Shown here in pieces: positions 3,337 through 35,112 of a stretch of DNA of 36,818 bases. Location of the stretch: the NCBI RefSeq assembly GCF_006345805.1, contig NW_021836872.1:1-36818 (forward strand). The letters are read 5' to 3'. The stretch is from Octopus sinensis. Lineage: Eukaryota. Each line of letters starts with the position of its first letter. The stretch's first letter is position 1. The position numbers and the translations under genes are program-made. The notes beneath the pieces were generated by a model. That model saw only the letters and a list, made by a program, of their open reading frames with translations, was not told where the DNA came from and made no database searches.

Positions 3337-3340
<4 letters not shown>

Positions 3341-3398: not shown

Positions 3399-3402
<4 letters not shown>

Positions 3403-3570
3403 AATATTAGGGAATGAATCCAAAATTACAGGGAAAAATCAGATTTAGGGTTAAATCCATTTTATAGTAAAATATTATATAATATAATTCGAGACAAAAC
3501 CACTATTTTAAAACCAAACAAGGAAAGACTTAATCAATACATAAAATTTTAATATAAATTAAATAAACCG

Positions 3571-14100: not shown

Positions 14101-16755
14101 ATAGTATACTATACTAGTGTAAGTATAGCATATACTATACTAGTGTAAGTATAGTATCATATATTATGTTTGCAAAATGATATAATCTGACCTTGCCAGC
14201 AATTTATATGTGTGTACTGTTTGCCAGGAATGCGTTTAATATGTAAATTAGTCTATCCAGTTGTGTCACACTGTTGAACATATTGGGTATTGAAGCAATG
14301 TATCCATGGACTGTTGGTGGGTTAGATGTGGTATTAATGAAAGAGCAATAACTCTTGAAATATGTAAATACACCCATTACCTTCATTTTCTCTCTTCAAT
14401 TGCATTGTTTACATAGACATATTCATTCGCAAATGTTGTAACTGGCAGTGCTGATTCTGGAAAGCTATCACTATAAAGCACCATAGGAGGGAGACAAGTA
14501 CAGTTTGACAATACAAGAATACACTGTTTGCTTTATCATTTTTTTGTCAAAATCATATTTCATTTGAAAGTTTTCTATGTGAACTTTCTTCTCATATAAT
14601 TTGAATCAAAATCCGACTCATGGCATTTTATGCCATTTTCCTTCAATCACCCTGGTATCTCCACCCATTCACAAAGTTTGTCCTTTTTTTTTTTTATTTT
14701 GACTACTGAAAGGTAGCTCTCATCTTTGTTCAGTGTGCTGGAGCACTATAACTTGATTCTTTTGCAGACCATACTGTCATGAAAAGGACTTTTACTGCTT
14801 TATTTTGATATAAAAATCAATGAAAGTAGGTCAAATATTCCCTATGACATATAAAAGTGAAAATGTTATCATCAACTTTCACTTAGAAAATAGTACATTT
14901 TCTTCAAGATTTTTATGTCATAAGAAAGAAAAATTACTTGCCAGTTAGATATGATCATTGCTGAATCTGGCCACAGTATGGTGAAAAAGTGCAAAGTCAA
15001 TAAAGAAAATGGTACACTGACACTACTAGTCTCTGTGGTGAGAGGTTAAACAGAACACAAATCTGAGGTTTCAGAATCCAAGGCTCTGGTTTGGGCCAGT
15101 GTTTCAAGAAATGAACTAATTACTAAGTAAACATATTTCTATAGAAAAATGCACTAAAATGAGCTGCTTCAGACTTCTAGAACCCATAATTAGCATAGAA
15201 TGATTGTATTGTGAATCTTTATTCCCTCTTGTTGTGTAACAAAGTGTGAAGATTGATGTCTGAATTATACCTTGTGGATATTCTTGTACATGTAAATTTC
15301 ATTGAGAAATATTGGTCAAATTTTGCAAACACAATTATATTGTACAATGAATATTATTTTGTAGACTATTTAGGTTCAATATGAAGCATTTTCTTTCCCA
15401 ATTTTGAATATAGTTGGATAATTTGTAGTAGTGTTTACATAGTCATTTTAGGTTTTTGTCTCTCTCTCCTACTAACAAGTTTGCTATGTTACAGATGTTT
15501 TTAATATCTTTAATTCAAGCTTTTAATGCTAAAGCAAGGAATTAGATTTTACATTTTGTTTGTCTTTTAATCTGGGTCTACATGCAATTCTGAGAAAGGT
15601 GCCAGGTCATCATGTCATGTGCTAGAAGCAACAGCTAAATCTTCTGTAAATCATACACTTTTTCATTTGAAAATGTTTTCAAAGATCATTTCATAACCCA
15701 AACGTTTCTCTTGTTTTTTTAAGTGCATTGTACAGAAAAAAGAGACCAAAATCAGTCCAGAGGGGAGGAAAGGAGGTTGGAAAAAATCATAGATTTTCAA
15801 TAAATTTTTCTATAACATACCTTGCCCTGTCATATCCAAGGCGGTGGTGAAAAGAAAATTGGAAAAATCCCCATCAAAATTCAGCTTAGATGGACATCCT
15901 GACCCCAACTCTGCTGCTTATAGCTATTTTTAATAGCCCATTAAAATTGTATTGAAATGGTGTCATGATCCCAAATCTCAGGATTTATTTAGCTTGTATC
16001 TATTACAAATATGCCAAAACTCAAGTCCTTGTGACTCGTACTTTTGAATTTAGCTAAGTCTGAAAACCCTGAAATTGACTGTTTGTTACATGTAACAAAA
16101 TAGGTTTTACATAAATATTTTTAAAATTGCTCCCAAAACAAAGTTTTATATTCAAAAACCTGAAAAAAAATAGAAAGAAAAAGAAAGCCACCTATTTGTG
16201 TAATACAAGTTGGTTATCACCTCAGTTTCAAAGATATATTACAAAATGGTCAATTATTCATGTAGGCTAATTAGGCAAGATTTTAACAAATTCACTGGAC
16301 ACCCAAGTCATCATATCTCCTAAAATATTCATTCAAATTTCACAAATGAGGTATCAAAATGTTTGTTTTTGGATGCTCTCCAAGAAAATGTACAGTAGAA
16401 ATTACATTTAAATAGTTTCAAAAATTCATAGTGACCCCTATAGAAAATCATATTTTACTTGGATGTTCTGAGGTATTTGAAAGAGAGAGTGTAATGGAAG
16501 ATGCTAAAGATATGACTAAACAAAACACTGTTTTTTCTTTGCATTTTTTAGATTAACTGTGTCTAGTATTTTTATTACTTATCCTCTATACTGCTCTTCC
16601 TAATTTCACCATGATAATACTTGCTCATGGGTTCCTGTTTTTGCAAAGACAAGTTCCTATGATTTATGTTGAATTATTTTTTACACTATTATTTTGCATC
16701 ACGGACTATTTGTAGAAATTGTTCCTATCAGTATTTATCATTTTCTTTGTAGATA

Positions 16756-16810
16756 ATGGAATTTAACCCGTTATATTTGAAATACTTGTTCCTTGCACAA
16801 TGCTTCTGTG
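16756..16810 (+). CDS. Host gene coding exon 1: signal peptide of an Ig-superfamily receptor (FGFR-like, tentative)
   Basis: Acceptor ttttctttgtAG at 16751-16752, then ataATGg (strong Kozak context). Encodes MEFNPLYLKYLFLAQCFC + g, with donor GTAAGT at 16811 (phase 1). Splices in frame to 30680, giving ...FCVSLG|IIEGG. Confidence 0.75.
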
Positions 16811-17109
16811 GTAAGTAACAATATGTCTCTTATATAAACATTTTTATTCAGAATTTTTAATTGTCATAAATTTGTATCCACTGTAGAATTTAATCATAAC
16901 TATTGCTGTTTGATCCTAAGGCCAGTGCTGATAAATTATGTTTAAAGGTGTTGCATATGTTGATATTTCATATTGTTTTTGCAGCTTCATTTTCCATTAT
17001 TAAGGTGATAAGTGGTGATTTGAGGTGAATTTGGCTGCTATTTCTAGCAGATTGACTTGAACCTGACTAGCCTACATCTATTTTCATGGCTACTATATAT
17101 TGGCACAGT

Positions 17110-17252
17110 TATAGAGCTTAGAAGTTTGTGTTCCAAACAACTAGCTTTGGGTTCAGTTTCACTGCATGGCACCTTAAGCAAGTATGTTATACTATAGCTC
17201 CAGATCAACCAAAGCATTCTGAGTAGATGTGGCAGATAACTGAAAGCCCATC

Positions 17253-17303
<51 letters not shown>
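17110..17303 (+). mobile_element. 5' half of a tRNA-derived SINE, ending in its internal (TA)n tract
   Basis: gggttcagtttcactgcatggcaccttaagcaagt...actgaaagcccatcatatata is homologous to the reverse complement of 33730-33890. Confidence 0.6.
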
Positions 17304-17305
<2 letters not shown>

Positions 17306-17391
17306 TGAGAAAGCACGTGGTTGAATATATAGAAAATAGTAAAAAGTGAAAAAACTACAGAAGGCTTGTTTTAAAAGGTTAAAAAATATAT

Positions 17392-19385
17392 TTAGTTAGT
17401 TAGTTAGTTAGTTAATTTGGCTCAAAAGCAAATAGCAAGGCCATGTAGGGGGACATGGAGTTAAGTACAGGGTGGTGTTCATGTAAAGAGTTCAGGCCAC
17501 TTGAGGTCCAGGGAGGCTTTGAACAAAGCGGTCGTCGGCATCTTCACCATCTCGTCTGGCAGCTTGTTCCACGGATCTGCAACCCGGACGGAGAAAGTTC
17601 CTCTCCTTCGATTGAGATGAAATCGTCGCAGGTAGAGCTTTTCGGAATGACCCCGCAGCCAACGCTCCGGAGCAGGAGTGAAGAACAGCTCTTTCGAGAG
17701 GTTACACTTCCCGCTTATGATGTTGTGGGCGAGAATGAGATCACCACGGCGGCAGCGTTTTTCAAGAGAACAAAGGTCGAGCGTCCTCAGCCTTTCTTCA
17801 TAGGACAAATTTTTGAGACCATGAACCATGCGGGTAGCCAGCCTCTGGACTCTTTCGAGGTGCTGTATGTCTTTGAGGAGATAAGGAGAAGAGGCTTGAA
17901 TCCCATACTCCAATATGGGTCTCACCAGCGTGACATAGAGTGGCAGGAATATGGCTGCTGTGAGCATTCCGAATGACCGTCGAATCAAAAACAGAATTCC
18001 GCGCGCTTTGTTGGCAGCATGGACGCACTGGGCCGAAGGCGAAAAGGAGGAATCCACCAAGATACTCAGGTCCTTTACCTGATCGGTCCTCTCCAGCAGC
18101 AGACGACCCGGCTCGAAATCAAGTTGAGTTGCAGGAGTAGAGCCGACAGGCAGATGACAGCACTTTGACACGTTCAGACACAGGTCCCAATCGTTAGACC
18201 ACTTCCAAATTTGGTGGAGGCATCGACGAAGATCCTCTATACTACCGCGAGGAGCGACCAGTTTGATATTGTCGGCAAATAGAAGGGTGTGTTCCGTGAG
18301 GTCGTCGGGCAAGTCGTTTATGAAGACTAAGAACAACAAGGGCCCAAGCACTGAACCTTGAGGCACGCCACTGCTCGCACTGGAGACGTTGGACCGTGAA
18401 CCATTAACTTGAACTTGGAAGGAGCGATCTGAGAGGAAGGCACCAACCCATCGTACAATATCCGGATGGAAACTATATGCTTGAAGCTTGACAAGTAGTA
18501 GGCGGTGGTTTACCGAGTCAAAAGCTTTGGCAAAGTCCAATAAAACGATGTCAACAGCATCACTATCATCGAGGATGCGCGTCACCAATTCTTCCATTAC
18601 TAGTAAGTTGGTCAAGCATGATCTCTTCGGCACGAAGCCGTGTTGGGAATCAGTGATCGAGGCTGTGTTTAGGAGGTGGAGCATCATACTTTTCTTAAGG
18701 ATGGTTTCGAACATCTTGCTGATTATTGATGTAAGGGAAACCGGTCGGTAGTTAAGCGGGCCTTCGCGGCTCCCTTTCTTGAAAATTGGGCAGATTATCG
18801 CTGTTCTCCAGTCTGCAGGTATAACACCCGTCGCCAATGACATATTGAATAGTCGTGTTAAGGGCTCGCAAATGACCGGAGCCAACGCTTTGATAACCAG
18901 TGGGTGTATGCCGTCAGGGCCGTGATCCTTGTTGACATCGAGGCCTTGAATAACACGTTTGACTTGGTCCCGCGTGATGATCAATCGAAGCATTGGAGGT
19001 ACCGATCTATCAAATGGAGGGGGTTCACGACCATCATCTTGTTTGAAAATAGTTGAAAAAGCCTCAGCAAATAATTGACTCTGTTGATAAGGATCCTCAA
19101 TCGATACGCCTGTTGAGTCTACCAACGTTGCAATCTGGTTGTTCAAGCGGGAATTCCGCTGGACATGGGCAAAGAAGGTTTTGGGATTGCTACTGGCATT
19201 TGCCGCGATTTTGTATTCATAACTGAAGCGTTCCTTCTTTTCAATTTTCACGGCTCGGTCTCGTTGAGTTTTGTACACCTCAAAAGCTGCAGTCGAATCC
19301 AGATTTTTGAATTCAGCCCAAGCAATATCTCTGAGTCGACGTTCTCGTTTAACCTTCTTCGTCACCCAGGGCTTGTGTTTCTTCT
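17392..19385 (-). mobile_element. CR1-group LINE, 5'-truncated, with an uninterrupted 628-codon RT ORF (17479-19365) and (TAAC)n tail
   Basis: GPDGIHP, NYRPVSLTS, QHGF, DFAKAFDSV, GVPQGSVLGPLLF, FADN (catalytic FADD changed to FADN), RRGDL, FSVRV..WNKLP. No endonuclease domain present. The tail reads ttagttagttag on +. Confidence 0.95.
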
Positions 19386-19900
19386 CCTTATCTCCTCAAG
19401 CTTCTTCTCCTTATCTCCTCAAAGACATACATCATCTCGAAAGAGTCCAGAAGCTGGCTACCTGCATGGTTCTTGGTCTCAAGCATTTGTCTTATGAAGA
19501 AAGGCTGAAGACGCTCGACCTTTATTCTCTCGAAAAACACAGCCACCGTGGTTATCTCATTCTCACTCACAACATCATAAGCGGAAAGTGTAACCTCTCA
19601 AAAGAGCTGTTCTTCACTCCTGCTCCAGAGCGTGGGTTGCAGGGTCACTCCGAAAAGCTCTATTTATGACGATTTCATCTCAATTGAAGGAGAGGGGCTT
19701 TCTCCGTCCGGGTTGAGGATCCGTGGAATAAGCTGCCGGATGAGATAGTGAAGATGCCGATGACTGCTCGGTTCAAAGTCTCTCTTGACCAGAAATAGCC
19801 TGAACTCTTTGTATGACCACCCTCCCTGTACATATCTCTCTGTCCCCCTACATGGCCTTGCTTTTGCTTTTTGAGCCAATAAAAATTGAATTGAATTGAA
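19386..19900 (+). mobile_element. Second, older 3'-end copy of the same CR1 family in opposite orientation, with (ATTGA)n tail
   Basis: About 85-90% identical by eye to the reverse complement of 17410-17900. It carries CGA>TGA and TGG>TAG stops and ends aaaaattgaattgaattgaa. Confidence 0.92.
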
Positions 19901-22313
19901 AAAATACTCTGCCAGAACCTTGGACCCTACACTACAAAAATGTTTTGCTGTTTTTACCAAGTTTGCCCTCAGTAGCTGCCCAAACTCCTCTGCTGAAAGC
20001 TTCCCTGGAATTATATCAGGGAAGCTTTGTATACCACATCAATAGATACTTTCGGCATGAGAGAAAGGCAAAACCCAGATTGGTTCAGTGCTGAGCTCTC
20101 AGCTGGAAACAGTTATCGAAGCAAAGTGTGCAGCTCTGATGCAATACAAGAGTGATTCTTCTACAAAGTCACTCAAAGAACTCAGAAAGGCAAGAAATAA
20201 AACCCAACTGACTGCCAGACGCCATGCAAATAGGTACTGGCAGGAAATCTGTCAGAGTATCCAGTCAGCTGCTGACGGTGGTGACACCTGTGGGATGTAT
20301 GCCGGTTTGAGAAGGCCCTCGGTCCATCCGCAACTAAGTCAGCCCCTCTGAAATCAACTACTGGAGATCTCATCAAGGACCAAATCAAGCAAATGGATAG
20401 ATTAGTGGAGTACTACCAGGATCTCTACTCACGGGAGACCACGGTAGCTGAGTCTGCAATCGAGGATGTCAAGATCTTCCCAGTCATGTGTGAACTTGAC
20501 AGTCTGCCATCTATAGCAGAACTCACCAAGGCTATTGACTCCCTAGCAAGAAATAATGCTCCGGGAAAAGATGGCATCCCCTCAGAGATCATCAAAACCG
20601 GCAAAAACACCATCCTGCTTCAGCACCTTCATGAGCTTCTGTATCAGTGCTGGGAAGAGGGTACAGTCGCTCAGGATATGCAGGATGCTAACATCATTAC
20701 ACTTTGCAAAAACAAAGGTGACCGTGGTAATTGTAACAATTACCGTGGAATATCTCTTCTAAGCACTGTTGGAAAGACCTTTGCTCACGTTATCCTGTCC
20801 AGGCTACAACTGCTTACTTCTCAAATTTATTCAGAATCACAGTGTGGCTTTAGAAGAAGCAGATCAACTATTGACATGATATTCTCCATACTTCAGGAGA
20901 AGTCCAGACAGCAGAAAATGTCATTAGATATGGTCTTCATTGATCTGACAAAAGCCTTTGACTTGGTAAGTAGAAAAGTCCTCTTCATCCTGCTCCAATA
21001 AATCGGATGTCCACTAAAGCTGCTGGGGATCATCAAATCTTTCCATGATGATATGCAAGACATCATACAGCACAACGATTCAACATCAGCCGCCTTCCAA
21101 ATAAAAAATGGGGTAAAGCAAGGTTGTTCCTTGCTCTTATATTATTTGGCATCTTCTTCTCACTGCTGCTGTCACATGCCTTTGAGACATCAGATGATGG
21201 AATCTTTCTGTACAGTAGAAGTGATGGGAAACTGTTCACTCTCTCGCGTCTGTGTGCCAAGACCAAAATCAAAAGTGTCCTGATCAAGGAAATACTATTT
21301 GCTGATGATGCCGCTCTGGTATCACACACAGAAGAAGCCTTGCAAAGGCTTATCAACTGTTTTGAGCAAGCATGTAGTGACTTTGGCTTAGTTATCAGCC
21401 TCAAGAAGACCAACATCATGGGTCAGGCTACATAGGACATCCCAAACACACATATTGGAGACCACAGACTACAGGAAGTGGAGAAGTTTACTTATTTTGG
21501 CTCTACCGTCACCTACAACCTATCCCTTGATGCTGAGCTAAATATACGCATTGGCAAGGCAGATGCTGTGATGGCCCAACTCTCCAAATGGGCATGGGAC
21601 AACAATAAGCTGACCAAGACCACAAAAATGAAGATTTACCAGGCATGTGTACTTAGCACTCTACTGTATGGAAGTGAGTCTTGGACACCATATACACGCC
21701 AAGAGCGTCGCCTAAATATCTTTCACCTGCACTGCCTCTGGAAAATCCTTCTCATCAAATGGCAGGACCATGTCTCCAACAAAGATATCCTCAAGCAAGC
21801 AGGAATACCAAGCTTGTTTGCACTCCTCACACAAAGACGTATGAGGTGGCTTGGACATGTTAGCCATATGGAAGATGGCAGAATCCCCAAGGACATACTC
21901 TATGGAGAGCTTGCTTGGGGCACTAGGTCTGTGGGAAGACAGTTCTTACGATACAAGGATGTTTGCAAAAGGGACATGAAGGCCTGCAACATTAATATAA
22001 CCAACTGGGAAGCAGTTGCCAGCAACCGTGGAGATTGGCGACGTACTGTAAAAGAGGGAACACAAAGGAGTGACATAGAGAGAGAGGAGAAATGGAAAAA
22101 CAAGAAAAGATTTCAAGAAGAAACTATGACATTACAACCAGCCAGGCAAAGTCTTCGCTACATTTGTGGCACCTGCTTGAGGGATTGTTTGTCCAGTATA
22201 GGACTACACAGCCAAAGCAGGAGATGTATTAGGACATGAAATGTAAAAGCCAGACTAGATTATTTTATATGCAACTCCATTGTCTCGCGAGACTAAAAGG
22301 ATGCCAACAACAA
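19901..22313 (+). mobile_element. RTE-clade LINE (family B), 5'-truncated and pseudogenised, with (CAA)n tail
   Basis: RERQNPDWF, APGKDGIP, NYRGISLLS, ESQCGFR, FIDLTKAFDLVSR, GVKQGC, LFADD, YGSESW, RWLGHV, C-terminal CGTC.RDC.S.IGL.S, and 3' end ccattgtctcgcgagactaaaaggatgccaacaacaa. Several stops and frameshifts. Confidence 0.92.
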
Positions 22314-22319
22314 TATATA

Positions 22320-22545
22320 TGGATTTCGTAGACAGGAACTGAAACAAATCAACTGTATATATATATATATATGTATGTATATATGTAAGTGTATGTGTGT
22401 GTCTTTGTGTTTCACCCTCATCACTGCTGTTCATTTATTTACATCCACACAACCGACTGTTTTCACAAGAACAAACTAATAGAATAAGTACCAGGCTTAT
22501 CGACATAAATAAAGCACTAGGCTGTGTCTCATATTTTTGTTTGCC
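22320..22545 (+). mobile_element. Degraded SINE (middle, internal TA/TG tract and 3' half)
   Basis: ggatttcgtagacaggaactgaaa, a (TA)n/(TG)n tract and aatagaataagtaccaggctt match the element at 33430-33890. Confidence 0.55.
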
Positions 22546-22577
22546 CACTCAGTTGTATCTATCAATTTGTCTTTTTA

Positions 22578-22717
22578 TGTGTGTGTGTGTGTATATCTAT
22601 ATGTATTTATGTATGTATGTATGTATGTATGTATGTATGTATGTATGTATGTATGTATGTATGTATGAATGTATGTATGTAACTATCTATCTATATATCT
22701 ATCTATCTATCTATCTA

Positions 22718-22772
<55 letters not shown>
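22578..22772. repeat. Compound microsatellite (TG)n-(TATG)n-(TATC)n-(TA)n
   Basis: Direct reading. Confidence 0.95.
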
Positions 22773-22779
<7 letters not shown>

Positions 22780-22987
22780 GAAAAAAACCATCTTTTATCA
22801 ATTCAAAATGAACAATTAAATTACACCCTTTAGAAAGTTACCTATAATAGAAATATTAACATTAAAATAGCAATAAAATGTCAATGATTAAGTAAATTGC
22901 TAAAAAATAAAATAATAATATATATTATATTGTGTGAAACTTGATTTAGTACTTCTAAATAAGTTTTGGATTTTATTTCCTCAAATA

Positions 22988-23027
<40 letters not shown>

Positions 23028-23873
23028 TAACACCCTAATGGGAGCCTTAACTCCCAAATTTTAGTAATTTCTTTTATGATCCAAAACTAGGTCAAAAGTA
23101 CTGAATGAATCTTTATGAAATTTGGAAATTATATTCTATGCATAAGGGCCATAAACCCCATGACAATTCATGTAATTTTGCTGTTGATGAAATTTTAATC
23201 ATAGATATTAGACACAAATGAAGTAATATTTATAAAATTTCATCTTCTTACAAGTTAGAAAGACCCCTCCATGGGGACTTAACACGCACAATTTTGTCAT
23301 TTTATCTAAGCATAAATGAATACAGTTGTGCTCTTGGAAGCTGTAGGGTTACCTGAGCATAAAAGATGAGCATTATTTATGGTGAGGAATCCTACATTGG
23401 GAGTGGTATCTACTAGGGTAGGATAGCTGACTGCTTATTGTGATGATTCATCTTTTGGTTTCCTGTAGCTTTGCTCTCTTTTACAAACCCAGTGAACATA
23501 TATTTCCTATTTCAAAGAAATTCAAGCAATAGATATAAGACCAAAGTTAAAAAGATTCTCAACAATTCAACTTCTCTGGTTGACATTAAGATGCCCACCC
23601 CCAATAGGGGCATTAACTCTCACATTTTAGAGCTCTATGACCTCCATTTTTCAGGAGCAAAATCCTTTTAACAGGTTCCATAAAACTGGAATTTTGGAAT
23701 ATGCGCATAAAAATCAGTAGTATGGGATACATGTGGCACAATTACAATTTTGTTTGTGTGTGTAAAGAGGCAAATAACCCTCATCTGCAATTTTGATGAA
23801 ATTCGAAACATAGGTATTCCAGTTCATTACAGAAAATATAACAGAAAAGTCTAATTCTTCAATTGTGTGTAAC

Positions 23874-23900
23874 TTGGGCAACGCCGGGTAACTCTTCTAT
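23874..23900 (+). mobile_element. Helitron-like 3' end (hairpin + decayed CTAG); the element may start near the (TA)n at about 23000
   Basis: ttgggcaacgccgggtaactcttctat resembles the 3' ends at 11690-11717 and 28704-28735. Confidence 0.35.
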
Positions 23901-23949
23901 TATATATATACGTGAAAGAGCACAATTCAAGCGTGATTGTTACGAACAT

Positions 23950-24210
23950 CGACTTACTGGCACCTGTGCCAGTGGCATGTGTTAAAAGATTTGAACGAGG
24001 TCATTGCCAGTACCGCCTGACTAGCCCTGTGCTGGTGGCACATAAAAAGCACCCACTACACTCTCGGAGTGGGTGGCGTTAGGAATGGCATCCAGCTGTA
24101 GAAACTCTGCCAGATCACGAATGGAGCTTGGTGCGACCGTCTGGTTCACCAGCCCTGAGTCAAAATCGTCCAACCCATGCTAGCATGGAAAGCAGACGTT
24201 AAATGATGAT
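23950..24210 (+). mobile_element. RTE-type 3' tail with two unamplified TGTGCC-NNN-GGCAC hairpin units and a (GAT)n end
   Basis: gtggcacataaaaagcacccactacactctcggagtgg...ccaacccatgctagcatggaaagcagacgttaaatgatgat; same family as 36310-36500. Confidence 0.75.
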
Positions 24211-24796
24211 ATATATGATATATATGGATATATATGATATATATGGATATATATGATATACATGGATATATATATATATATATATCCATTTATAAAGAGG
24301 CATTTTTCATCAATAAATTTCTCCCCCAACTAAATATGAACACACAACTCAATACAGAACACCACTAACTCTTCAATTGAAACCACTAAACCCTATACAC
24401 TTCCTACACTACTCACATCTCTAAATCCAGAACTACTTACCTCCCTTACAAATAATCTTTTTTCTCAGGAACTATTAGACCTGACACCCTTCATTAACCG
24501 GTGTTATTCAAGCGATGAATAGTTTTGCGTAAACCATCATTTGTTTTGTTCTCTTACTTTATTATCATCTTATAATCATCTCATAATAAGGACTTTTATG
24601 ACTCGTATTACTACCTCAGTCAATCTAAATGTATATATTTGTCGTTATCTGTCATAAATAGCCTTTTTCTATTTGCAATGTGCATTTTTGTTGATTTTTC
24701 TTATTTTACCCTTACATTTCCATGTGTATTTTTTATTTTCTTTCCGTAACATATTTCTACTATCCATATATATATATATATATGGATATATATATA

Positions 24797-25295
24797 TTTT
24801 TTCATTTTTTCATTTTATCTAGTTTCAGCTCACGAGCTGTGGCCATGCTGGGGCACCGCCATTTGGTGTTGCTACATGATTTTACTTCACGAATGCTTTT
24901 TAGCAATTGACATTTGGTGCATGAGAGAGTTTGATGCAGCTGCCCTTATCTGCACCTCCTGCTGTGATGTTGGTTCATCTGGGACACCTGATATGAAGTG
25001 GTCCCACATTATTTTAAAGACATCTGCATCCACACCATGCAGGTCTCTCAGGTCCTTCGGGAGGATATTGAAGAGCTGTGGACCTTTGAAGCCCAGGCTA
25101 TCACAGTATCTTGTCCTACATCTTGATGGCAAATTTGGAGTCCTTGGCCCTATGCAGTGGAGCCCAGTTCTAGTATTTGTGTAACTCTCAATGTGAAAGT
25201 TTGAGACAAGTCCTTCCAGGATCTTCCAGAGGTATATTATGGCATATCTTTATCGCCTACGCTCTAAGGAATAGAGTCTTAATCTCTTGAGTCTG
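24797..25295 (-). mobile_element. CR1-group LINE (second family): 3' end with UTR hairpin and (AAAAAATG)-like tail
   Basis: RLKRLRLYSLERRR*RYAIIYLWKILEGLV...SLGFKGPQLFNILPKDLRDL...VPDEPT...RAAASNSL, then UTR ggcggtgccccagcatggccacagctcgtgagctgaaac. Confidence 0.85.
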
Positions 25296-26372
25296 CTTTC
25301 CTTGAAGAAAATAACTTGCTGCCTGACACCCAACATGGTTTCAGCCAGGAAGTAGCTGCCTAACTCGGCTCCTACAACACAATGACTGGGTACTGAAACA
25401 ACTGCTCAACCACTCAAATGTGGAAGTCATATATCTCGACTTTGCAAAGGCCTTTGATAAAGTCGATCATGGAATGATATGTCACAAACTGTGTGATCTT
25501 GGCATAGTTGGGAAATTGGGAGAATGGCTTCATGACTTTCTGAAGGATAGAAGTCAGGTGGCCACCTCCAATGGGGCCACCTCCAATAACATGCAAATAG
25601 TGGCGGTTGTTCCTCAAGGCACTATTTTGGGACCACTACTGTTCATAATGGCCCTCAGACATGCCCTCATCCGCAGGGAGCCACGATCACAAGTTATGCC
25701 GATGATACAAAAGTTTCACAGGTAATACAGAACCCTGAAGACACTATGCACCTGCAATGTGAGCTGGATGAAATATACAAATGGGCTGAAAAGAATAGCA
25801 TGCAGTTCAATGCTGAAAAGTTTCAAGCTTTATGCTATCAGCATGCAAAACTAAATGCAATACTCAATAAATACACTGGACCTGGAGGGATTGCAATCCC
25901 AGAGGCACAATCAGTGTGAGACCTAGGTATTTACATGATTAATGATGCAACCTTTCATGTGCATGTTGCTAAATTGGCAATGAAATGTAGGTGGCTGACC
26001 GGATGATTCTTAGAGCTTTTAGAACAAGAGACCAGGAAACCATGACGGTCCTCTGGAGGACACTTGTCCTTAGCCACTTTGACTATTGCTCTCAGCTATG
26101 GTCACCAACCAGTGTCAAATAATCACAGAATTTGAGGCAATCCAACGAAGCTACACGAAGAAGATAGCCTCTATATAGATGTAAGCTATTGGGAAAGGCT
26201 CAAGAGATTAAGACTCTATTCCTTAGAGTGTAGGCGATAAAGATATGCCATAATATACATCTGAAAGATCCTGGAAGGATTGTCCCAAATTCACACATCG
26301 AGAGTTACACAAATACTAGAACTGGGCTCCACTGCATTGCCAAGGACTCCAAATTCGCCAAGGACCCCAAAT
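25295..26372 (+). mobile_element. Inverted internal (RT) segment of the same CR1-group family
   Basis: AFLEENNLLPDTQHGF, YLDFAKAFDKVDHG, VPQGTILGPLLF, SYADDTK, DYCSQLWSP, ERLKRLRLYSLECRR*RYAIIY. Ends abruptly at a short ccaagga(c/t)ccaaatt duplication. Confidence 0.88.
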
Positions 26373-26374
26373 TG

Positions 26375-27040
26375 AGGGGCTTCTTATCAAAGTGTCTATC
26401 TGCATTTGCTTGTTTATTCGAATGTGTAGTTTCCTAGTAGTGCTCCCTACGTAGGGTGCCCCACATTTATTGCAGACGACCTCATATACTGCATGTTTTG
26501 ATGTCATTGATGGGGCAGTTGGTGAGTGTGCACTCCACAGTGCTCCCTTAGGTATTTTTCTTGATAGAGCTTTCTTCAGGGATAGACTGGTGTGTACCAG
26601 CTGTATGTTAAGTCTCTCCCTGCGGATGGATGTTGGGTTAGCTGCTGATGTTCTGTCATCTAAGTAGGGCAGTCTAAGGAAGCATGTTTCTGATCTGATG
26701 TTATGGGCTTCTCTGTGTAGTTTACCCACTTTCATTATTCACAGAGGCAGTCTTTTAGCTGTGGATGGTGGATAACCGTTGTGTGCTAAGTTCCTGAGGA
26801 ACCGCTTCATGCTGATGGCTTTGTCACTTACTTCATTGCATCTGTCTCTTATGCATGTTATTTAATTTTGTTATGTGCAGTTTTGGCTTGTGGACCGGGC
26901 CGAATCATAATGCATGAATAGATTCCTAGTCACTGCTTCTTTTGTAAAGATTCATGTGGATGTAACCATCCTCTGTGATCCTGATTTGGAAATCCAGCAG
27001 AGAGAGAGATCCAGGCTTGTCTGGGTGTTCATTTTCAAAT
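26375..27040 (-). mobile_element. Penelope-like element fragment: RT thumb region + GIY-YIG endonuclease
   Basis: AVYEVVCNKCGAPYVGSTTRKLHIRINK (GIY-YIG motif) in ORF 26316-26735. Upstream: EHPDKPGSLSLLDFQIRI and CIRDRC...FLRNLAHNGYP. Confidence 0.8.
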
Positions 27041-27654
27041 TTATGTGACTGTCAATGTAGTTGAATTTTTCATGTATGGAATTTACTCCTTCCGTGAAGG
27101 GGTGAGCATCTCACATTATTCCATCTTTACACAACTACATTCTTTAAATACATATGTATTTATATATATATATATACTTGCTGACATAACCGGTAATTCT
27201 AGGAAAGTGGGGCTTGTCCCTTTGTTCCATTCTCATAATTGTTTCGCTAATCCATTAACAACAATACAAAGTATCAGTCTTACACAGGAACTTGTTTTTA
27301 GGAATTCCCAATAAGTTATGAATTCCCAAATTGTGAAGTCAGTTATGTAATAACATGAAATTAATTACCCGATAGTAAGATTCAAACAAAGTAGCCCCAA
27401 AATGGCTTTAATACATTCCCAGAGTATATAGAACTTAAGAGGAAGCACTGATAAGGTATGTATACTAAAATCATGAAGCATGTTATGTAAGGACAGGCTA
27501 ATGAGATAGGAGATAATAACAATTCAAAGTAAATAACTCTGAAAAAAGCTTTTGTGCATCTGCAGAGAATATTACCCTCAGCGGTGCTAGTGTTTACTTC
27601 GCAAGTTGTGAAATTTGTTTTTGTGATCTTGTTTGTGCTATAGTTTGCAATTTT

Positions 27655-28690
27655 GTCATAAACTGAAAGTTTGAACAAGAGCCAATGTGAAATTTTGCGT
27701 TAAACTTGGGAAGTCTGCTACAGACATTGATCATGCTTTGGCAAGCTTACAGCGATGAGGCAATGAGTTGTATGCAAAGTTTCAATTAGTGTGGATGCTT
27801 CAAAAGTGGAAGAACATCCTAAGAAGACAGAGAGCAATCTGGGTGACCTACCATGAATGTCTGCCTGTAAAATTCATCAGCTTGTGCATGAGGATCATCT
27901 GAAGACAACAACATTGCTGATGCCGGTTTGTCATATTGGTTCATGGAGGCAATCCTAACATCTGAATTGAACATGTGGTGTGTCTTTGCCAAGTTTGTCT
28001 CCTGCTTGCTGACTACTGAACAGAAAGAACATCATGTCAAAGTCTGTCAAGATCTCCATTGGCAGGCTTCTGATGACCCATCCTTTATGTCAAGAATCAT
28101 CACCGGTGATAAGAGTTGGGTCTATGGGTACAAACCTGAGATGAAGCAACCATCATCCCAATGGAAGAGGCCTTCATCACCATAACCAAAGAAGGTATAA
28201 CAGATCTACAGCTCAATCAAGAGCATGCTCATTGTTTTTCAACATCACCAGTATTGTGCATAAAGAATTCATCCATAAGGCCAGACAGTCAATGGAGAAT
28301 TTTACTGTGATGTTGTGAAGCATTTGAGGGAGGACATTTGGCTAAACAACCAGATCTATTGAGCACACAGAAGTGGATTCTTCATGATGACTGCTCCCTA
28401 TCTGAGTTCCTTGCCAAAAACAACATGGTATCACTCCCACACTTGCCCTATTGCCAGGTTTAGCATCTGCAGACTGCCATCTCTTTGCCAAGGTAAAAAT
28501 TTAGCTCAAAAGTTGCCATTTTAACACTGTTGTCATGATGAAGAGTGAATCACAGAAAGTGCTCGACTTGCTTACAGAAAATGATCTCCAGGCCAGATTC
28601 CAATAGTGGCAGGAATGTTGGGATCAGTGTATTGCTGTGCAAGATGACTTTTTCAAAAGAGATGCTGTTAAAACTTAAGTAAACAAGTTA
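27655..28690 (+). mobile_element. Decayed mariner element (near-complete transposase remnant)
   Basis: EQRANVKFCVKLGKSAT (frameshifted), AKFVSCLLTTEQK, IITGDKSWVYGYKPE.KQ.SSQWK, GQTVNGEFY, LHDD, EFLAKN, HLPY..LAS, W..CW.QCIA. Many disruptions. Confidence 0.85.
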
Positions 28691-28703
28691 TTTTTTTTAA
28701 ACA

Positions 28704-29865
28704 CTAGCAGGTAGCCGGCTTTGCCCAGGATTAAGTTAGGATTATAAGCTAATGAAGTTCGTTATTTCAAACCAAACTAAGTAACATCGATGTCATATTG
28801 AGCGAAATCTGTTGAAATTGGTAAAATTTTGGCTGAAAATGAGTTGCAGATGACTTGATTGGGAAATCCCATAAGGAATCGGTCTATGATTTTTTTTCCC
28901 ACTCATCGATTTTTTTCGTTTTTAGAGAACTGAGAGTATTCAAAGATCCCATGACTCCTAAGTAAGGCTGGCATCAAGTTTGAACAAAATACATCAAATT
29001 CGGTAAAAGTTATGGTTGAAAATGGGGTGTAGCCATTTTATTGGGAAATCCTATAAGGAATCGGTTTATCGATTTTTTTTGATTTTTTTATCCTGATTAA
29101 ATGGAAAACCCCATGAGGAATCAGTTAATTGGTTTTCATCCCAAATAGGACTTAACCGAACACAATATTGTTGATTCAAAAACATAAATATATTCTTTAA
29201 AGTTGGTTTTCACACCCAACTCAGTTCTGCAGAATCGGTGTCGTGATGGGAGCGCATGGGTTGATCAGGCTGCACATGCACATGTGATCAGGTTGCACAT
29301 GTGATCAGGTTGCACATCCAGCCCTTTGAAAACACCACCCCCTCATCTAACCCCCCTTTGCCCGGGGTTGGGAAGCCTTCCAGCAAGGAAAATAGAATGC
29401 CCAAAAGAGCTCCCGCTCCTCTGTGTCAGAAGTGGTACATTCAGATCACAACTAAGTTTTAAGAATATATATATATATACACACCACACACACGATCATA
29501 CACATATTGCATACATGTGTTTTGTTCAGATATATGTTCGTGTGTTGTGTGTGTATGTGTGTGGTTGTGTTGCCCGTATATCGACAAAATACTTAACAAA
29601 AGTTTTAACAAAAACTTACTCATAGCTAGAAGGGGACTTAACTCCTGTTGTAAACAATTGGGATTCTCCGACTTGAAAATTGCTAAAAGTTTTGATGAAA
29701 ATTCATTTTTACCATTATGCTGGGGCCTCTGAGAAAAATAAGTTGACAAAAATACAGCTAGGGTCATGATGAATGTCCTAAAATTGGAGCGACATGCATG
29801 CTATGGGACATGCATAAATTACATCCACGTACACACACACATCATGCCTTTTATATATATACAGA
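28704..29865 (-). mobile_element. Non-autonomous Helitron, about 1.16 kb, with internal repeats
   Basis: On the minus strand, 5' A|TCTGTATATATATAAAAGGCATG and 3' cctgggcaaagccggctacctgCTAG|T. Internally, gaaatccc..taaggaatcgg occurs three times (about 28863, 29045, 29105) and the 17-mer tgatcaggttgcacatg three times (29262-29317). Confidence 0.72.
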
Positions 29866-29926
29866 TAACTAATCTGAGAACTTTTTAATACCATTCCCTA
29901 CCTTTTAATATTCTCTTTGTCTTTAA

Positions 29927-30140
29927 GGCGGTGAACTGGCAGACTCATTAGCACACTGGGCAAGATGTTTAATGGCATTTTGTCCAGCTTTACATTCTCA
30001 GTTCAAATTCCACTGAGGTTGAGACTTTGCCTTTCATCTTTTCCAGGTCAATAAAATAAGTACTAGTTGAGCACAGGGGTCAATGTGATCAACTTATCCC
30101 CTCCCCCGAAATTCCTGGCCTTGTACCAAAATTTGAAATC
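29927..30140 (+). mobile_element. tRNA-derived SINE (second family)
   Basis: ggcggtgaactggcaga (A-box-like), gttcaaattcc (B-box-like, 30001-30011), body ttgcctttcatc...aaaataagtac...ggccttgtaccaaaatttgaaa. Paralogue at 31363-31570. Confidence 0.75.
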
Positions 30141-30679
30141 AATATTTTCACTGTCTTCTTCATTGTTCTCGCCACTGTTAATTTTTGCCCAATTAAATAT
30201 ATTAAATAAAATCTTTTAAATTTTAAAACCAAATGTGAATACAAATACAGATTTCACAGAAAATAGAACAAAATGGTAATCATCTGTGTTATTTAAATAA
30301 AGTTCAGGAACCGAATATCTCTTCATATTTGAATGTCTGATTTCACATCCTAAAGTAGGTGTGTGCTTCTGATTGACATGTTACTTTTACATTTCTCCTG
30401 ATCATATGATATGATTATAATATTTGAGTCATTGACAGAAAGTTGATGCCTTAGGCATTACCTATGATACATGGGTGTGATTCCTATTCTCTCTGAAATA
30501 TTCTCTGTACATCTATTCACATTTAATTTTAATTTATACTTTAAAACGAATTTTTCAATTAATCCTCTTAATTTTAATTTATTTCAAGTTGTTGTTCTTG
30601 CATTAGAAAAATTACTTCTTGGAATGACAAGGTAGCTATTAAATGATATGTATGTGTTTTATATTTTCATTTCCTTCAG

Positions 30680-30952
30680 TTTCTCTTGGAATAATTGAGG
30701 GTGGTGCAAAATTTCCCAAGGTGAATCAACCAGTCACTTTTGAATGTCCTTTTAAAAATCAAAACTTTAAACACTGGAAAATTGATGGAAACATCATTAG
30801 CGGAACTAATAAAACTAGAAACTTTGAAGCAAATGTGCTTCCTAACAATGTCAGAATCATAAACATCACACTTCTTCAAAATATTGAGCAAACAATTGTT
30901 TGTGAAAACACCACTGGTGAGAAGACAAGATTTCATGCAATACCATTATTCA
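30680..30952 (+). CDS. Host gene coding exon 2: Ig-like domain (symmetric phase 1-1, 273 bp)
   Basis: Acceptor ttttcatttccttcAG (30678-30679), donor GTAAGT at 30953. Encodes (V)SLGIIEGGAKFPKVNQPVTFECPFKNQNFKHWKIDG...IINITLLQNIEQTIVCENTTGEKTRFHAIPLF: two Cys 51 residues apart, a core Trp, and N-glycosylation sequons NKT, NIT, NTT. Confidence 0.85.
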
Positions 30953-31127
30953 GTAAGTACAAATATAAATCATTTGTATGTATTTTCCTGTCAATATTAA
31001 TCTATTATGACCATGAAGAAAGTATATTTCTATAAACACTAACTTTGAGTTTCAGTCAATTCACAAAATGTTGTAACAAACTTATACTGCCAATAATACA
31101 TTGAAAGAATGTTCATTTTAATACAAG

Positions 31128-31170
31128 ATGATGATGGAGATGATGAAGATGATGATGATTTTTCTTCACT
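31128..31170 (+). CDS. Host gene coding exon 3: acidic box mini-exon (43 bp, phase 1-2)
   Basis: Acceptor ttcattttaatacaAG (31126-31127), donor GTAAGT at 31171. In frame with exon 2 it encodes (N)DDGDDEDDDDFSS(L). Confidence 0.75.
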
Positions 31171-31362
31171 GTAAGTATTTTATCCTATATATGTTGTTCT
31201 ATCAGTATTTACGTGTTGAAAAAAATATATCTTTCTCCTTGTACTACAATACATTTCAGCAATTCAAAAACAAACTTGTTTATATGTTTATGCCAATAAT
31301 ATTTTAATGTTTATAATTTCCCTCGTTATATTATTCCAGTGTTGTTGAAATAGGAATATTCT

Positions 31363-31570
31363 GGCTGAGCTGGCAGGATTGTTACTGTGCTGGGAAAAAT
31401 TCTTAGCAGTATTTCTTTTGATTTTATGTTCTGAGTTCAAATGCTGCTGGAATCAGTTTTGCTTTTAATTCTTTTGGCATCGATAAAATAAGTACCAATT
31501 GAACACTAGGGTCGATTTAATTGACTTTACTCCTTTGAAATTGATGGCCTTGTGCCAAAACTTGAAATCA
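31363..31570 (+). mobile_element. Degraded copy of the tRNA-derived SINE at 29927
   Basis: gagctggcagga...ttctgagttcaaat...aaaataagtacc...ggccttgtgccaaaacttgaaatc. Confidence 0.7.
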
Positions 31571-31818
31571 GTTTTATCGCTGAGATTAAATGTTTGATTT
31601 CAGAAGAGAGTCATAAATTATTCTTGGTTTGATGAAATTAACAAAATTATTAATTATTCTAAAAAGCTGAGAAGTCATCATCATCATCTTCGTATCTTAA
31701 AAAGAACAGTCTTTCAATGCATTATCTTTTTTAGTGTGTATACTGGTTGAATTTCTGATTGTCATCAGAAATGTTATTCTTGAATATGCACACACGCACA
31801 TACACACAAGTATATATT

Positions 31819-33260
31819 ATCATCATCACCATCATCATTGTCATCGTTTAGCATCAATTTTCCATGTCAGTATGAGTGAGATGGTTTGACTGGAGCTGGC
31901 ATGGCCAGGAGCTGTACCAGGCTCCATTGACTTCTGTAGGTTGATAAGGCTGAGATGCTGGAGATGGTGAGGAGAAAGAGCCCCTCGCAGACAAACATTG
32001 CACATCATACTGAACATAGTAACTTCATACCTTTCTAGTCTTTGCATGCCCTCTACATTCAAGGACCATGTCTGCCTATCACGTGGCATTGCTGTTTGTG
32101 CACAGGCATCACACAACCTTCCTTTCTCTCAGAAAGAGAGACTTTTGGTTGCCACTTGAGGTAAAAGATCTCTGAACTTTCTCCATCTTATTCTAGCAAT
32201 TTCATTTCCTCCTCCACTGAAAATTAGGTCACCTAGCTAGCAGATATTGCCCTGTACCTTTAGAGCACCTCTTGGGCATTTGTGAAAATCCATTTCCTGT
32301 ATACTTGTAGATTTTATGACTCCTATGCATTTTCCACATACAGACACTAATTTCTCTGTTAACCTCCCTACTGTTCCACTGCACCTGTTTTGCATCCATT
32401 GCATACCCAGAATACGCTGAAATGAATTTCTGCCTACACCATTCTTACATACTGAGAAAAATCATTTACCTGAAGTGAGTAGGGTCCTGTTTGTTTTCTT
32501 GCTTACTAAGGCTTTTGTCTTTGCTAAGTTAACTTCAAGGCTCTTTGATTCCAGGCTTTGCTTCCACACCTGAAACTTTTTTCTAGTTTTGTTACTGATT
32601 CTGCTGTGAGAGCAAGGTAATTTACATATAGTAGTTCTCATTGGCTTCCAGGCTTAAATTCCTCTGTTATGACCTGGAGGACAATTCTGAATAGGAGGTG
32701 GCTGAGGACTGAGCCTTGATGAACACCTAACCCTACACTAAATTTATCACTGTGCTCATGACTAATTCTAACATTATTTATAGCAACCCTGTACAAGACC
32801 TGAACTGCTTTTCACAAGCCATCTATCTCTAGCTTCCTGAAAGACCAGCATTTTACAGAGCAGGGTGCTCTGTTGAATGCTTTCTTCAGGTCAACTAATG
32901 CCAAGTACAACAGCTTATTCTTAGCTTAATATTACCCTTGTACTTGCCTGACTTCTTCCCATTACTGTGCCAAACTGCATTTCATCTAGCTTAATTTGTT
33001 TCTAATTAATTGGGTTATTATTCTCTCCATAACTGTCATCACTTTGTCAAGCAATTCTAGACCTCTATAATTAATTATGTTAAATGAATTTCATTTACTA
33101 TTTTAGTCACTGATTATGATACTAGTATACCAGTCATTGGGGATTATACCTTCCTGAATAACCTAATTAACTAAACAGTGTCTAGACTGTATCCCTGAAC
33201 CAAGGATTTTTCCAGTCTCCATATCTTTAATTACATTATTTATCACACTGCTGTCTATAT
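31819..33260 (-). mobile_element. RTE-clade LINE (family A) remnant with RT region, internal deletion and (GAT)n 3' tail
   Basis: NYRGLELLDKVM, LVDLKKAFNRAP, GVHQGSVLSHLLF, ELLY(V)N (YADD decayed), RIRWRKFRDLLP, QRLERYE...MCNV. The co-oriented 3' tail is at 31819-31930. Confidence 0.85.
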
Positions 33261-33429
33261 GAATGGTTGGCCCCTCTGTTGGGTTCACTTGATGGGGAGA
33301 CTCCCTTTTTCTATTCATCCGCCACATTTAATAGCCCTTCACAGTTGCTCTTTCACACATTTTTCTTTTCCAAACCACTAAATACCAGCATGCCATTATC
33401 TATCTGTACATCTCAATTCTCTCTGACAC

Positions 33430-33684
33430 ACTCTTTTACTACTTTACTTGTTTCAGTCATTTGACTGCGGCCATGATGGAGCACCGCAGTCGAGCAAATT
33501 GACCCCAGGACTTATTCTTTGTAAGCCTAGTACTTATTCTATCGGTCTCTTTTGCCGAACCACTAAGTTACGGGGACGTAAACACACCACTGTCGGTTGT
33601 CAAGTGATGTTAGGGGTATAAATACAGACACACAAACATACACACACACACAAACACACACACACACACACGCACACACACATG

Positions 33685-33724
<40 letters not shown>

Positions 33725-33890
33725 TACGATGGGTTTCCTTCAGTTTCTGTCTACCAAATCCACTCACATGGCTTTGGTCAGCCCGAGGCTATAGTAAAAG
33801 GTACTTGCCCAAGGTGCCATGCAGTGGGAATGAACCTGGAACCATGTGGTTGGTAAGCAAGCTACTTACCACACAGCCTCTCCTGCGCAT
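33430..33890 (-). mobile_element. Full-length tRNA-derived SINE with an internal (TA)n(TG)n microsatellite and a CR1-like 3' hairpin, inserted into the RTE remnant
   Basis: Minus strand: head gcgcaggagaggctgtgtggtaag...ggttcattcccactgc, microsatellite at 33635-33725, 3' half ...gatagaataagtactaggc...gcggtgctccatcatggccgcagtcaaatgactgaaacaagtaaa. Confidence 0.85.
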
Positions 33891-33989
33891 GTGTAGCAAT
33901 ATGCAAAATCTCGAGTCTCTCATCTTCATAATGTAAGATATTGGCAAACCTGTTTCTGTCTGTTTCTACCCTAGCAAGATAAATCCGGT

Positions 33990-34140
33990 ACCTTGCTTCC
34001 CTTTTAGCTACTTAATATGGTTCTTTGCTACCATCCTTTTTCCACACTTTCCAAACCCATTTCTTCTCTTTTATAGCCCTGTTGACCTGATTGTTCCACC
34101 ACCATATCCCCTTTGATCTGGCAAAAGCTTTGCTCCAACC
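33990..34140 (-). mobile_element. Upstream piece of the same RTE family A element
   Basis: WWWNNQVNRAIKEKKWVWKVWKKDGSKEPY, the typical post-endonuclease WW region of RTE. Confidence 0.7.
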
Positions 34141-34144
34141 ACAA

Positions 34145-34295
34145 ATCATCATCATCATCATCATCATTTCACATCTGGGTTGGATATTTGACAGGCTGGC
34201 TTGGCAGAAGATTGCATCAGGTTTCACTACCTGTTTTGGCAGGGGTTTTATGACTGGATGCCCTTGCTAACACCAACCAACTTATAGAGTGAACT
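34145..34295 (-). mobile_element. RTE-type 3' tail fragment with (GAT)n end
   Basis: Reverse complement: cactctataagttggttggtgttagcaagggcatccagtc...tccaaccc...atgatgatgatgat. Confidence 0.6.
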
Positions 34296-35112
34296 GAATG
34301 ATTGGAGAAACGAAAGAAAGGGGCACTCAATGCATTTGACTAGGAAAACGTATGTTAGTATTTAATAACAGTTTGGTTTGACTCCAAGCAACCTAAAGTT
34401 TTGTAGGCTTGTCATATGAACCTAGCTCCTCAGACTTAGGTAATCAAATATATATTTATACATATATATATATATATATAGTTGAAAAATTTCGTTATAG
34501 GTATAAATATACCAAAAACAAGTATAAAAAATGGAGAAAAATGACGTTGAATCAAAATTAGATTTAATACAAAATTGGATTCAATACATATGCACATTTT
34601 GAAAGACAAAAATATAATCATAGTAATTATAATTAAATTTATGCATTGTCATTCTTATTAGTGTGAGGAATTTTTGGAAGAATATAAAAAAAGTTTAATA
34701 AAACAAAAATTTTTTTAAATAAAGTAAAATGAAATAAAATAAGGTACAATGAGGGAGAATACAGATGGGGTAATAGGAAAAAATCGATATTTACAAACAA
34801 GTTGTAAAAGGGAAAATTAATAATAGTGAGAGGGAAGAAAAAGAAAGACATATCAATGTGCATGCAAGTCTATATGTGTAGTAATCTATAACATAAAAAT
34901 AAAAATCTAATGGATATGTTTAAAGAAATAATATCAGGTTGAGACAAAGTATAATATAAACAATGTGTCTAGTAGAATATAACGCAACAGGTTCACTAGC
35001 AGAAAAAAGCCATAGAGAATTATACATATACATATTAATAATGAAAAACGAAAATATATATATATTACAAGAGGCTTAAACCTGAGAGACAAGACTATGT
35101 TTGAAAATGATA

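Follow-up and report, generated by a model that had tools for sequence, protein, structure and literature searches.

The window analysed here is an entire unplaced contig of Octopus sinensis (36,818 nt; assembly GCA_006345805.1). This contig very probably includes the 5′ part of a gene belonging to a receptor family that is restricted to Octopus and has multiple immunoglobulin (Ig) domains; this part comprises the signal peptide and the Ig-like tip of the receptor, and is not the N-terminus of a fibroblast growth factor receptor (FGFR), as had been proposed in an initial annotation made from the sequence alone. Judged by comparison with its relatives, the gene belongs to a family of non-catalytic cell-surface receptors of the Ig superfamily (IgSF), in which the distal domain evolves rapidly and the tail carries tyrosine motifs. 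The parts of the gene found in the window are the following:

16756..16810, + strand: coding exon 1, signal peptide MEFNPLYLKYLFLAQCFC; ATG, 18 codons and 1 nt, with the donor G/GTAAGT at 16811
16811..30679, + strand: intron 1, 13,869 nt, filled with retroelements; the same insertions are present in the paralog contigs L001 and L002
30680..30952, + strand: coding exon 2, end of the signal peptide and Ig-like domain D1; 273 nt, phase 1-1
30953..36818, + strand: start of what is most likely a long intron 2 extending beyond the contig

Structure of exons 1 and 2

The search with the spliced peptide revealed matches to three O. sinensis proteins. The best of them is RefSeq LOC115232233 (P0001, 113 aa, "uncharacterized protein"), whose residues 1-109 correspond to exons 1 and 2 with 100% identity. 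Its paralogs LOC118761327 and LOC115230241 (P0002 and P0003) are 80-82% identical and are located on contigs of 60 kb and 28 kb, here called L001 and L002, respectively. L001 is the unplaced contig VCDQ01000950.1, from the same assembly as the window; two further copies were compared, L003, which is the O. bimaculoides locus, and L004, a Logan contig.

Exon 1 is identical in LOC115232233, in P0002 and P0003, and in the chromosomal protein P0022, which is described below; the exon and its donor are also kept in O. bimaculoides. Exon 2 is bordered by the acceptor ttccttcag/ and the donor A/GTAAGT. The acceptor tract is 85% pyrimidine, which places it in the top 0.3% of all AGs (mean over AGs, 47%). 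Five genomic copies, among them those of the two O. sinensis paralog contigs and O. bimaculoides, retain exon 2 together with its two splice sites.

For this part of the gene, the initial annotation was accurate. Its first two exons, with canonical sites and phases 1 and 1-1, match the RefSeq model and are kept in the paralogs and in O. bimaculoides, and their conceptual translation equals residues 1-109 of LOC115232233. The intron lengths that it gave, 13,869 nt and 175 nt (the second leading to a proposed third exon, discussed below), are those found in the sequence, and intron 1 does hold reverse-transcriptase (RT) open reading frames (ORFs). The cephalopod host was also recognized, as exons 1 and 2 belong to O. 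sinensis LOC115232233. On the other hand, the gene had been presented as hidden, and RefSeq already annotates it as the 113-aa protein.

Immediately before exon 1, at 16742-16755, there is a polypyrimidine tract followed by AG, ttttctttgtag (ttctttgtag), 3 nt upstream of the ATG and kept in O. bimaculoides. This putative acceptor suggests that coding exon 1 is an internal exon, with an unannotated 5′ untranslated exon located upstream.

The Octopus receptor family

A profile of the three 113-aa proteins was searched against 1.84 billion representative proteins. The only regions matched were the N-terminal parts of longer proteins, of 400-1220 aa, all from Octopus (E down to 1e-27). These proteins and others reached through them, all labelled uncharacterized or "Ig-like domain-containing", come from O. 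vulgaris, from O. sinensis (LOC118763632, LOC115212116 and LOC115212249) and from O. bimaculoides (LOC106879981, LOC106874069 and LOC128247863/4). At the sensitivity used, the family appears to be restricted to Octopus.

The Pfam domains present in the relatives are Ig_3, I-set, C2-set_2, ig and V-set, and no kinase domain was found in about 15 relatives (Pfam was run on seven, and precomputed Pfam lists were used for about 15). Complete members present about eight Ig-like domains, one transmembrane helix (e.g. GTIIGCVIGIVLLIILVLLI) and tails of 62-430 residues. The initial annotation had named two more Ig domains, a transmembrane segment and a split tyrosine kinase as what should follow downstream. 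The relatives have the Ig domains, about eight of them, and the transmembrane helix, and lack the kinase; this is the outcome for which the annotation itself had reserved the reading of another Ig-superfamily gene, and the identity as an FGFR or related receptor tyrosine kinase is abandoned here.

The tails carry 4-30 tyrosines, mostly within repeated units such as EPRYLxMKHPDxDDVYVNVSRKPD, with the motifs YxN, YxxM and Yxx[LIVM]. Motifs were counted with regular expressions alone, using [SIVL]xYxx[IVL] for the immunoreceptor tyrosine-based inhibitory motif (ITIM) and YxxL/I x6-12 YxxL/I for the corresponding activation motif (ITAM). The counts per tail reach 9 for YxN and 10 for YxxM, and range from 0 to 3 for ITIM-like and from 0 to 1 for ITAM-like motifs.

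In every longer member, D1 is followed by P[LI][FY]-N[DN]xGNLYPSSETPNAIKDKKFTLKC, which is the start of the second Ig domain (Ig2). The O. sinensis gene LOC118763632 (P0022), located on a 135.9-Mb chromosome, encodes an identical signal peptide, MEFNPLYLKYLFLAQCFCVSLGIIEGG, and a fourth D1 variant; it splices PLF directly to Ig2 (PLF-NDSGNLYPSFETPNAIKDKKFTLKC... / PLF-NDSGNLYPSFETPN...) and continues through Ig5. In the O. vulgaris protein P0017, a D1 that is 82% identical to that of the window is followed by a full receptor body with a transmembrane helix. The window shares with these proteins the family signal peptide and D1, the phase-1 exon junctions and the start of intron 2. It holds the first two exons alone, whereas the full-length Octopus relatives add about seven Ig domains, the transmembrane helix and the tyrosine-rich tail.

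On the O. sinensis chromosomes, some gene models of the family sit within others of the same strand: LOC115212116, with a range of 780 kb, contains a 464-aa Ig gene, and a gene with a 1173-aa product encloses the 141-kb LOC118763632. The arrangement reflects either tandem duplicates that were wrongly joined or a complex usage of 5′ exons. Because of this nesting, an organization similar to that of the clustered protocadherins, with variable 5′ exons joined to shared constant exons, was considered. It was rejected, since P0009, P0020 and P0022 are 64-88% identical over the shared domains; the longest exact stretch common to these three O. sinensis proteins has 40 aa.

The Ig-like domain D1

The 13 D1 sequences compared all have Cys41, Trp51 and Cys93 (C22, W32 and C74 when numbered from the exon-2 product), which form a Cys-x9-Trp...Cys core, with a Cys-Cys distance of 52 residues. 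The same 13 sequences share an N-I-L/I-N-I-T-L strand and a conserved N-glycosylation sequon, and the D1 of the window has three N-x-S/T sequons. The initial annotation had described a signal-peptide exon followed by a phase 1-1 exon for a divergent Ig-like domain, and this description holds, with the Cys-Trp-Cys core at the N-terminus of multi-Ig receptors; the absence of D-x-G-x-Y before the second Cys, which it had also pointed out, is correct for this subfamily (NIEQTIVC).

AlphaFold predictions made on the three 113-aa proteins alone reached a pLDDT of 41, and the alignment of 13 D1 sequences was used instead. With this alignment, AlphaFold2 predicted a domain of 9 beta strands (pLDDT 92.4, pTM 0.82). 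The Foldseek matches of the model in the PDB are mostly Ig domains, including T-cell receptor V-alpha, nectin-1 D1, obscurin-like-1 and, at rank 21, FGFR2 D1. The model supports an Ig-like sandwich as the fold class of D1, the set type (V or I) being left unassigned by matches with TM-scores of 0.5-0.6. Since all of the fold matches fall in this range, they provide no specific link between D1 and FGFR.

Region downstream of exon 2

The window continues for 5.9 kb past exon 2. Over the initial ~1 kb, it shares homology with the beginning of intron 2 of O. bimaculoides LOC128247863, an intron that has 21.5 kb; the gene models of the family span 141, 217 and 780 kb. The rest of the region is a mosaic of dispersed repeats, with a minus-strand RT fragment, microsatellites and a tandem array of 67/338 bp. 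The three-frame translations of the + strand at 31171-36100 presented no Ig, transmembrane or kinase coding potential, and tblastn with Ig2-Ig8 gave no match in the window, L001 or L002. The simplest interpretation, and the most likely one, is that a long receptor gene is cut off by the end of the contig within its intron 2. Two short segments of this region have been taken as exons:

31128..31170, + strand: proposed acid-box exon; a (GAT)n-type microsatellite run at 31127-31159, then GTAAGT; intronic
34077..34090, + strand: RefSeq terminal exon, coding part; tatag/CC CTG TTG ACC TGA, encoding TLLT-stop, 4 codons

The acceptor tract of the RefSeq terminal exon has a pyrimidine fraction of 0.80, and the exon lies inside a dispersed repeat, as 33940-34104 matches an unrelated minus-strand site in L003. 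It represents either a genuine short secreted isoform or a closure introduced by the annotation. In the first case the gene would be complete, encoding a 113-aa secreted protein with a single Ig domain (signal peptide, D1 and TLLT-stop), for example a soluble decoy or an opsonin-like protein, produced alongside the long isoform or replacing it. The RefSeq models P0001, P0002 and P0003 share the three-exon structure and the TL[LS]T-stop end, the terminal acceptor is a good one, AATAAA signals occur 0.6 kb downstream, and no later Ig exon is present on any of the three contigs. However, the terminal coding piece is limited to 4 codons within the repeat, the agreement of the three copies is not independent, since they derive from recent duplication or are haplotigs, and the contigs are shorter than the typical intron of the family. 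Furthermore, Ig2 does follow in the chromosomal LOC118763632, whose signal peptide is identical, and in the relative from O. vulgaris. We consider a complete small gene unlikely, and prefer a long receptor gene that is interrupted by the end of the contig.

Rapid evolution of exon 2

Positions 10855-31198 of the window were aligned to L001, resulting in 20.3 kb with 123 mismatches. Exon 2 contains 26 of the 123 and is the most divergent 273-nt segment of this alignment (exon 2 versus flanks, Fisher p = 5e-10). The ~18 kb at 10855-28800, including intron 1, are near-identical to the end of L001, mostly with 0-3 mismatches per kb, and intron 1 is collinear with L001 at 98.9%; the mismatches reach 15 per kb at 22.9-24.9 kb, and the two sequences diverge around and after exon 2. 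The D1 domains of the window and L001 differ in 20 of 91 residues, despite the near-identity over most of the 20 kb. These near-identical contigs could be haplotigs, assembly redundancy or the result of a very recent segmental duplication.

The same contrast was observed among the five genomic copies, where, in 10/10 pairs, exon 2 shows lower identity than either flank, taken as 300 nt upstream and 150 nt downstream (for example, identities of 90% for the exon versus 98-99% for the flanks, and of 72% versus 80-92%). Non-synonymous change is accelerated in this exon, with Nei-Gojobori dN/dS of 1.16-2.81 in all 10 pairs, which are not independent of one another; the exon versus intron divergence is the stronger statistic. 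In the three O. sinensis copies, the changes are concentrated in the first 50 codons of exon 2 (dN ~0.2). Within the first 150 of the 270 coding nt are found 22 of the 26 substitutions, and the Cys and Trp residues and the E-F strands are unaltered. When placed on the predicted structure, the variable positions fall in the A-B and B-C loops and in the C-C'-C''-D region, and no change affects strands E, F and G or the core residues. D1 is also the most variable domain of the ectodomain, with pairwise identities of 0.39-0.55 across the family; most of D2-D7 reach 0.66-0.85, and the last domain 0.50-0.69.

The same data bear on the idea of a dead partial duplicate, that is, a segmental duplication of exons 1 and 2 with their surroundings, without downstream exons and without function. 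Three near-identical units of exons 1 and 2 do occur on short unplaced contigs, with nothing downstream, in a repeat-rich region. Nevertheless, the frames and all of the splice sites are intact in every copy, the substitutions are unevenly distributed and spare the structural core, and dN exceeds both dS and the divergence of the introns, which is not predicted by neutral decay. A dead duplicate is thus quite improbable.

Taken as sequence patterns, these comparisons suggest diversifying selection on D1, the putative ligand-binding tip of the receptor; part of the divergence of exon 2 may come from gene conversion with a more distant paralog as donor. In the one individual sequenced, at least four D1 variants are found behind an identical signal peptide (P0001, P0002, P0003 and P0022), which implies at least two loci. 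A peak of D1 divergence on otherwise near-identical contigs is what balancing or diversifying selection would be expected to leave when it acts on alleles or very young paralogs, as at the MHC, KIR, CEACAM and Hydractinia Alr loci. Tentatively, the D1 exon could be the hypervariable specificity determinant of an octopus-specific cluster of immune-type or self/non-self receptors.

The proposed acid box

The initial annotation had assigned 31128-31170 to a third exon, encoding an acid box like that of FGFRs. The string aag/ATGATGATGGAG...TTCACT/GTAAGT does exist 175 nt after exon 2, and its in-frame translation is NDDGDDEDDDDFSS. The acidic run corresponds to a GAT/GAA/GGA repeat (31127-31159), the sole such run in the window. 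Its acceptor tract is merely average, with 50% pyrimidine versus 85% for exon 2 and 47% for the mean of all AG dinucleotides. For each of the 11 GTAAGT sites on the + strand, an AG further upstream and an open frame are available, which gives 76 candidate exons; therefore, the pattern of AG, open frame and GTAAGT carries no weight by itself.

The comparison with the other copies argues against an exon. In L001, L002 and L004, the acidic run is shorter by 15-18 nt and has no AAG acceptor, and in L004 the donor position reads GTATGG rather than GTAAGT. A segment of ~195 bp between two GCCAATAATA repeats, which holds the acid stretch, is missing from the homologous intron of O. bimaculoides. As its 43 nt lead from phase 1 to phase 2, the stretch would be out of frame with the Ig2 exon of the family, which is in phase 1-1 and has 291 nt in O. 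bimaculoides. The RefSeq model bypasses the stretch, joining exon 2 to 34077, and the D1-D2 junction of all relatives, PLF/PIY-N[DN]xGNLYPSSETPNAIKDKK, passes from PLF to NDxGNLYP without an acid box. On this comparative evidence, the acidic stretch is an intronic GAT microsatellite of variable length and not an exon.

An FGFR or a related receptor tyrosine kinase is almost certainly not encoded here: the signal peptide, the phase 1-1 exon for an Ig-like D1, the in-frame acidic run bordered by AG and GTAAGT and the FGFR2 D1 among the fold matches would all fit its N-terminus, but the relatives have about eight Ig domains and neither kinase nor acid box, the run is a microsatellite whose acceptor is absent from other copies and whose 43 nt disrupt the Ig2 frame, no FGFR appears among the PDB sequence matches, and no kinase or Ig coding potential follows on the + strand.

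The acid stretch was also considered as the decayed start of an Ig2 exon (NDDGD versus NDNGN). This was rejected because the segment occurs in L004 without the acceptor and is absent in O. bimaculoides, where the true Ig2 exon is located 21.5 kb downstream, and because the flanks are unrelated.

In L002, at ~22650-22720 (alignment columns 470-530), intron 2 presents an insertion with a tRNA B-box-like motif, GAGTTCGATTCTC. It is followed by a second copy of the segment TTTTTCT..CTGTAAG.ATTTTATCCTATATATG, the same that flanks the proposed acid box and that is single-copy within the window. The region of the GTAAGT donor may be part of a repeat resembling short interspersed elements.

Proposed mechanism and points against it

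In the proposed receptor, exon 1 would provide the signal peptide and exon 2 the membrane-distal Ig-like domain D1 of a type I membrane protein. This copy would continue past the end of the contig, with exon 2 joined through a phase-1 junction to an Ig2 exon located tens of kb downstream, as in the full-length relatives; beyond Ig2 there would be about six further Ig domains, a single transmembrane helix and a tyrosine-rich tail, with no catalytic domain. D1 may act as the ligand-recognition tip, under diversifying selection. Once a ligand is bound, a separate kinase would phosphorylate the tail, and SH2 adaptors would dock to it. Such signalling would resemble that of non-catalytic immune-type or adhesion receptors.

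Several observations weigh against this proposal. The 123-aa peptide of the three originally proposed exons matches no Pfam family at E <= 10, and the D1 profiles found no sequence match in the PDB. The fold matches are moderate (E 1e-3 to 1e-2 at the TM-scores given above), and Foldseek ranks 1-2 are occupied by bacterial proteins of the type IV secretion outer-membrane complex. Neither the window nor the 12.7 kb past exon 2 of L001 contains an Ig2 or later exon, and therefore this copy could be stand-alone or truncated; RefSeq closes all three contig copies four codons past exon 2. As for selection, the individual one-sided Fisher tests for dN>dS are weak (p 0.05-0.4), and divergence is also raised in a zone 0.5-1 kb upstream of exon 2, which is compatible with gene conversion from a more distant paralog.

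Comparison with known receptors and significance

FGFRs, with the arrangement D1, acid box, D2, D3, transmembrane segment and split tyrosine kinase, resemble the Octopus family in the signal peptide, in the phase 1-1 first Ig exon and in being type I membrane receptors. They differ in that the Octopus family has no acid box and no kinase, presents about eight Ig domains instead of three and shows no sequence match with them. A phmmer search of the PDB with the full-length P0009 recovered contactin-1, Dscam, ICAM-1, NEGR1, Robo and CEACAM5 (E 8e-6 to 1e-2), all through the middle Ig domains, and no FGFR. The similarity to generic Ig cell adhesion molecules is weak and involves the Ig domains alone; D1 and the tail match nothing.

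CD22 and the Siglecs, the CEACAMs and the KIR/LILR proteins are non-catalytic IgSF receptors with a fast-evolving distal domain and tails with tyrosine motifs. In the Hydractinia Alr family, unusual Ig domains escape sequence models yet fold as Ig in AlphaFold (PMC9546547). The Octopus family is similar to all of these in its divergent distal Ig domain, its additional Ig domains, transmembrane helix and tyrosine tail, its tandem clusters and the fact that the distal domain is the most variable. It differs in the tails, where canonical ITIMs are few, ITAM-like spacing is rare and YxN/YxxM motifs are dominant, and the likeness observed is one of architecture and evolutionary behaviour.

These results remove a false FGFR call from the annotation. 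The 113-aa "uncharacterized protein" of RefSeq probably corresponds to the 5′ end of a large receptor gene, truncated because the assembly split the gene. A literature search combining octopus with IgSF/ITIM returned nothing relevant, and six gene identifiers of the family had no mention in the literature searched. Cephalopods lack adaptive immunity and, to our knowledge, little is known about their variable recognition receptors. The tandemly duplicated and apparently Octopus-restricted family, with about eight Ig domains, is a candidate for pathogen, self/non-self or cell-cell recognition; its tip domain outpaces its own introns, and its tails are packed with tyrosine motifs of the SH2-docking type. 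The gene itself was already annotated; the family and its hypervariable D1 are offered as a lead for cephalopod recognition biology.

Repeats and other features of the contig

Two reverse-transcriptase regions were found in intron 1:

17479..19365, - strand: reverse-transcriptase ORF of a retroelement, 628 aa (Pfam RVT_1, E = 2.7e-30)
20393..21001, + strand: second reverse-transcriptase fragment (Pfam RVT_1, E = 9.3e-12)

The first is flanked by a pair of inverted copies of ~485 bp, at 17417-17899 and 19396-19879, which would be ~87% identical, judging from their reciprocal minus-strand matches to L001. This layout occurs in some retroelements with inverted terminal repeats. At the start of the contig, the block 1-2800 is GC-rich (54% versus ~33% elsewhere) and includes a row of + strand ORFs, one of which matches RVT_1 (E = 1.2e-12); it is another retroelement fragment.

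The tandem array at 35115-36340 has periods of 67 bp and 338 bp and ~51% GC, and it generates overlapping spurious minus-strand ORFs of 218-325 aa. Related units recur at 23962-24210 of the window and at many sites across the O. bimaculoides locus L003, and thus the array belongs to a dispersed repeat family. The segment 7001-9000 differs from its surroundings, with a GC skew of +0.31 and 43% GC. Long microsatellites are located at 3222-3407, 22576-22770 and 33624-33696, corresponding to (AT)95, (TATG)49 and an (AC)-rich run, respectively.

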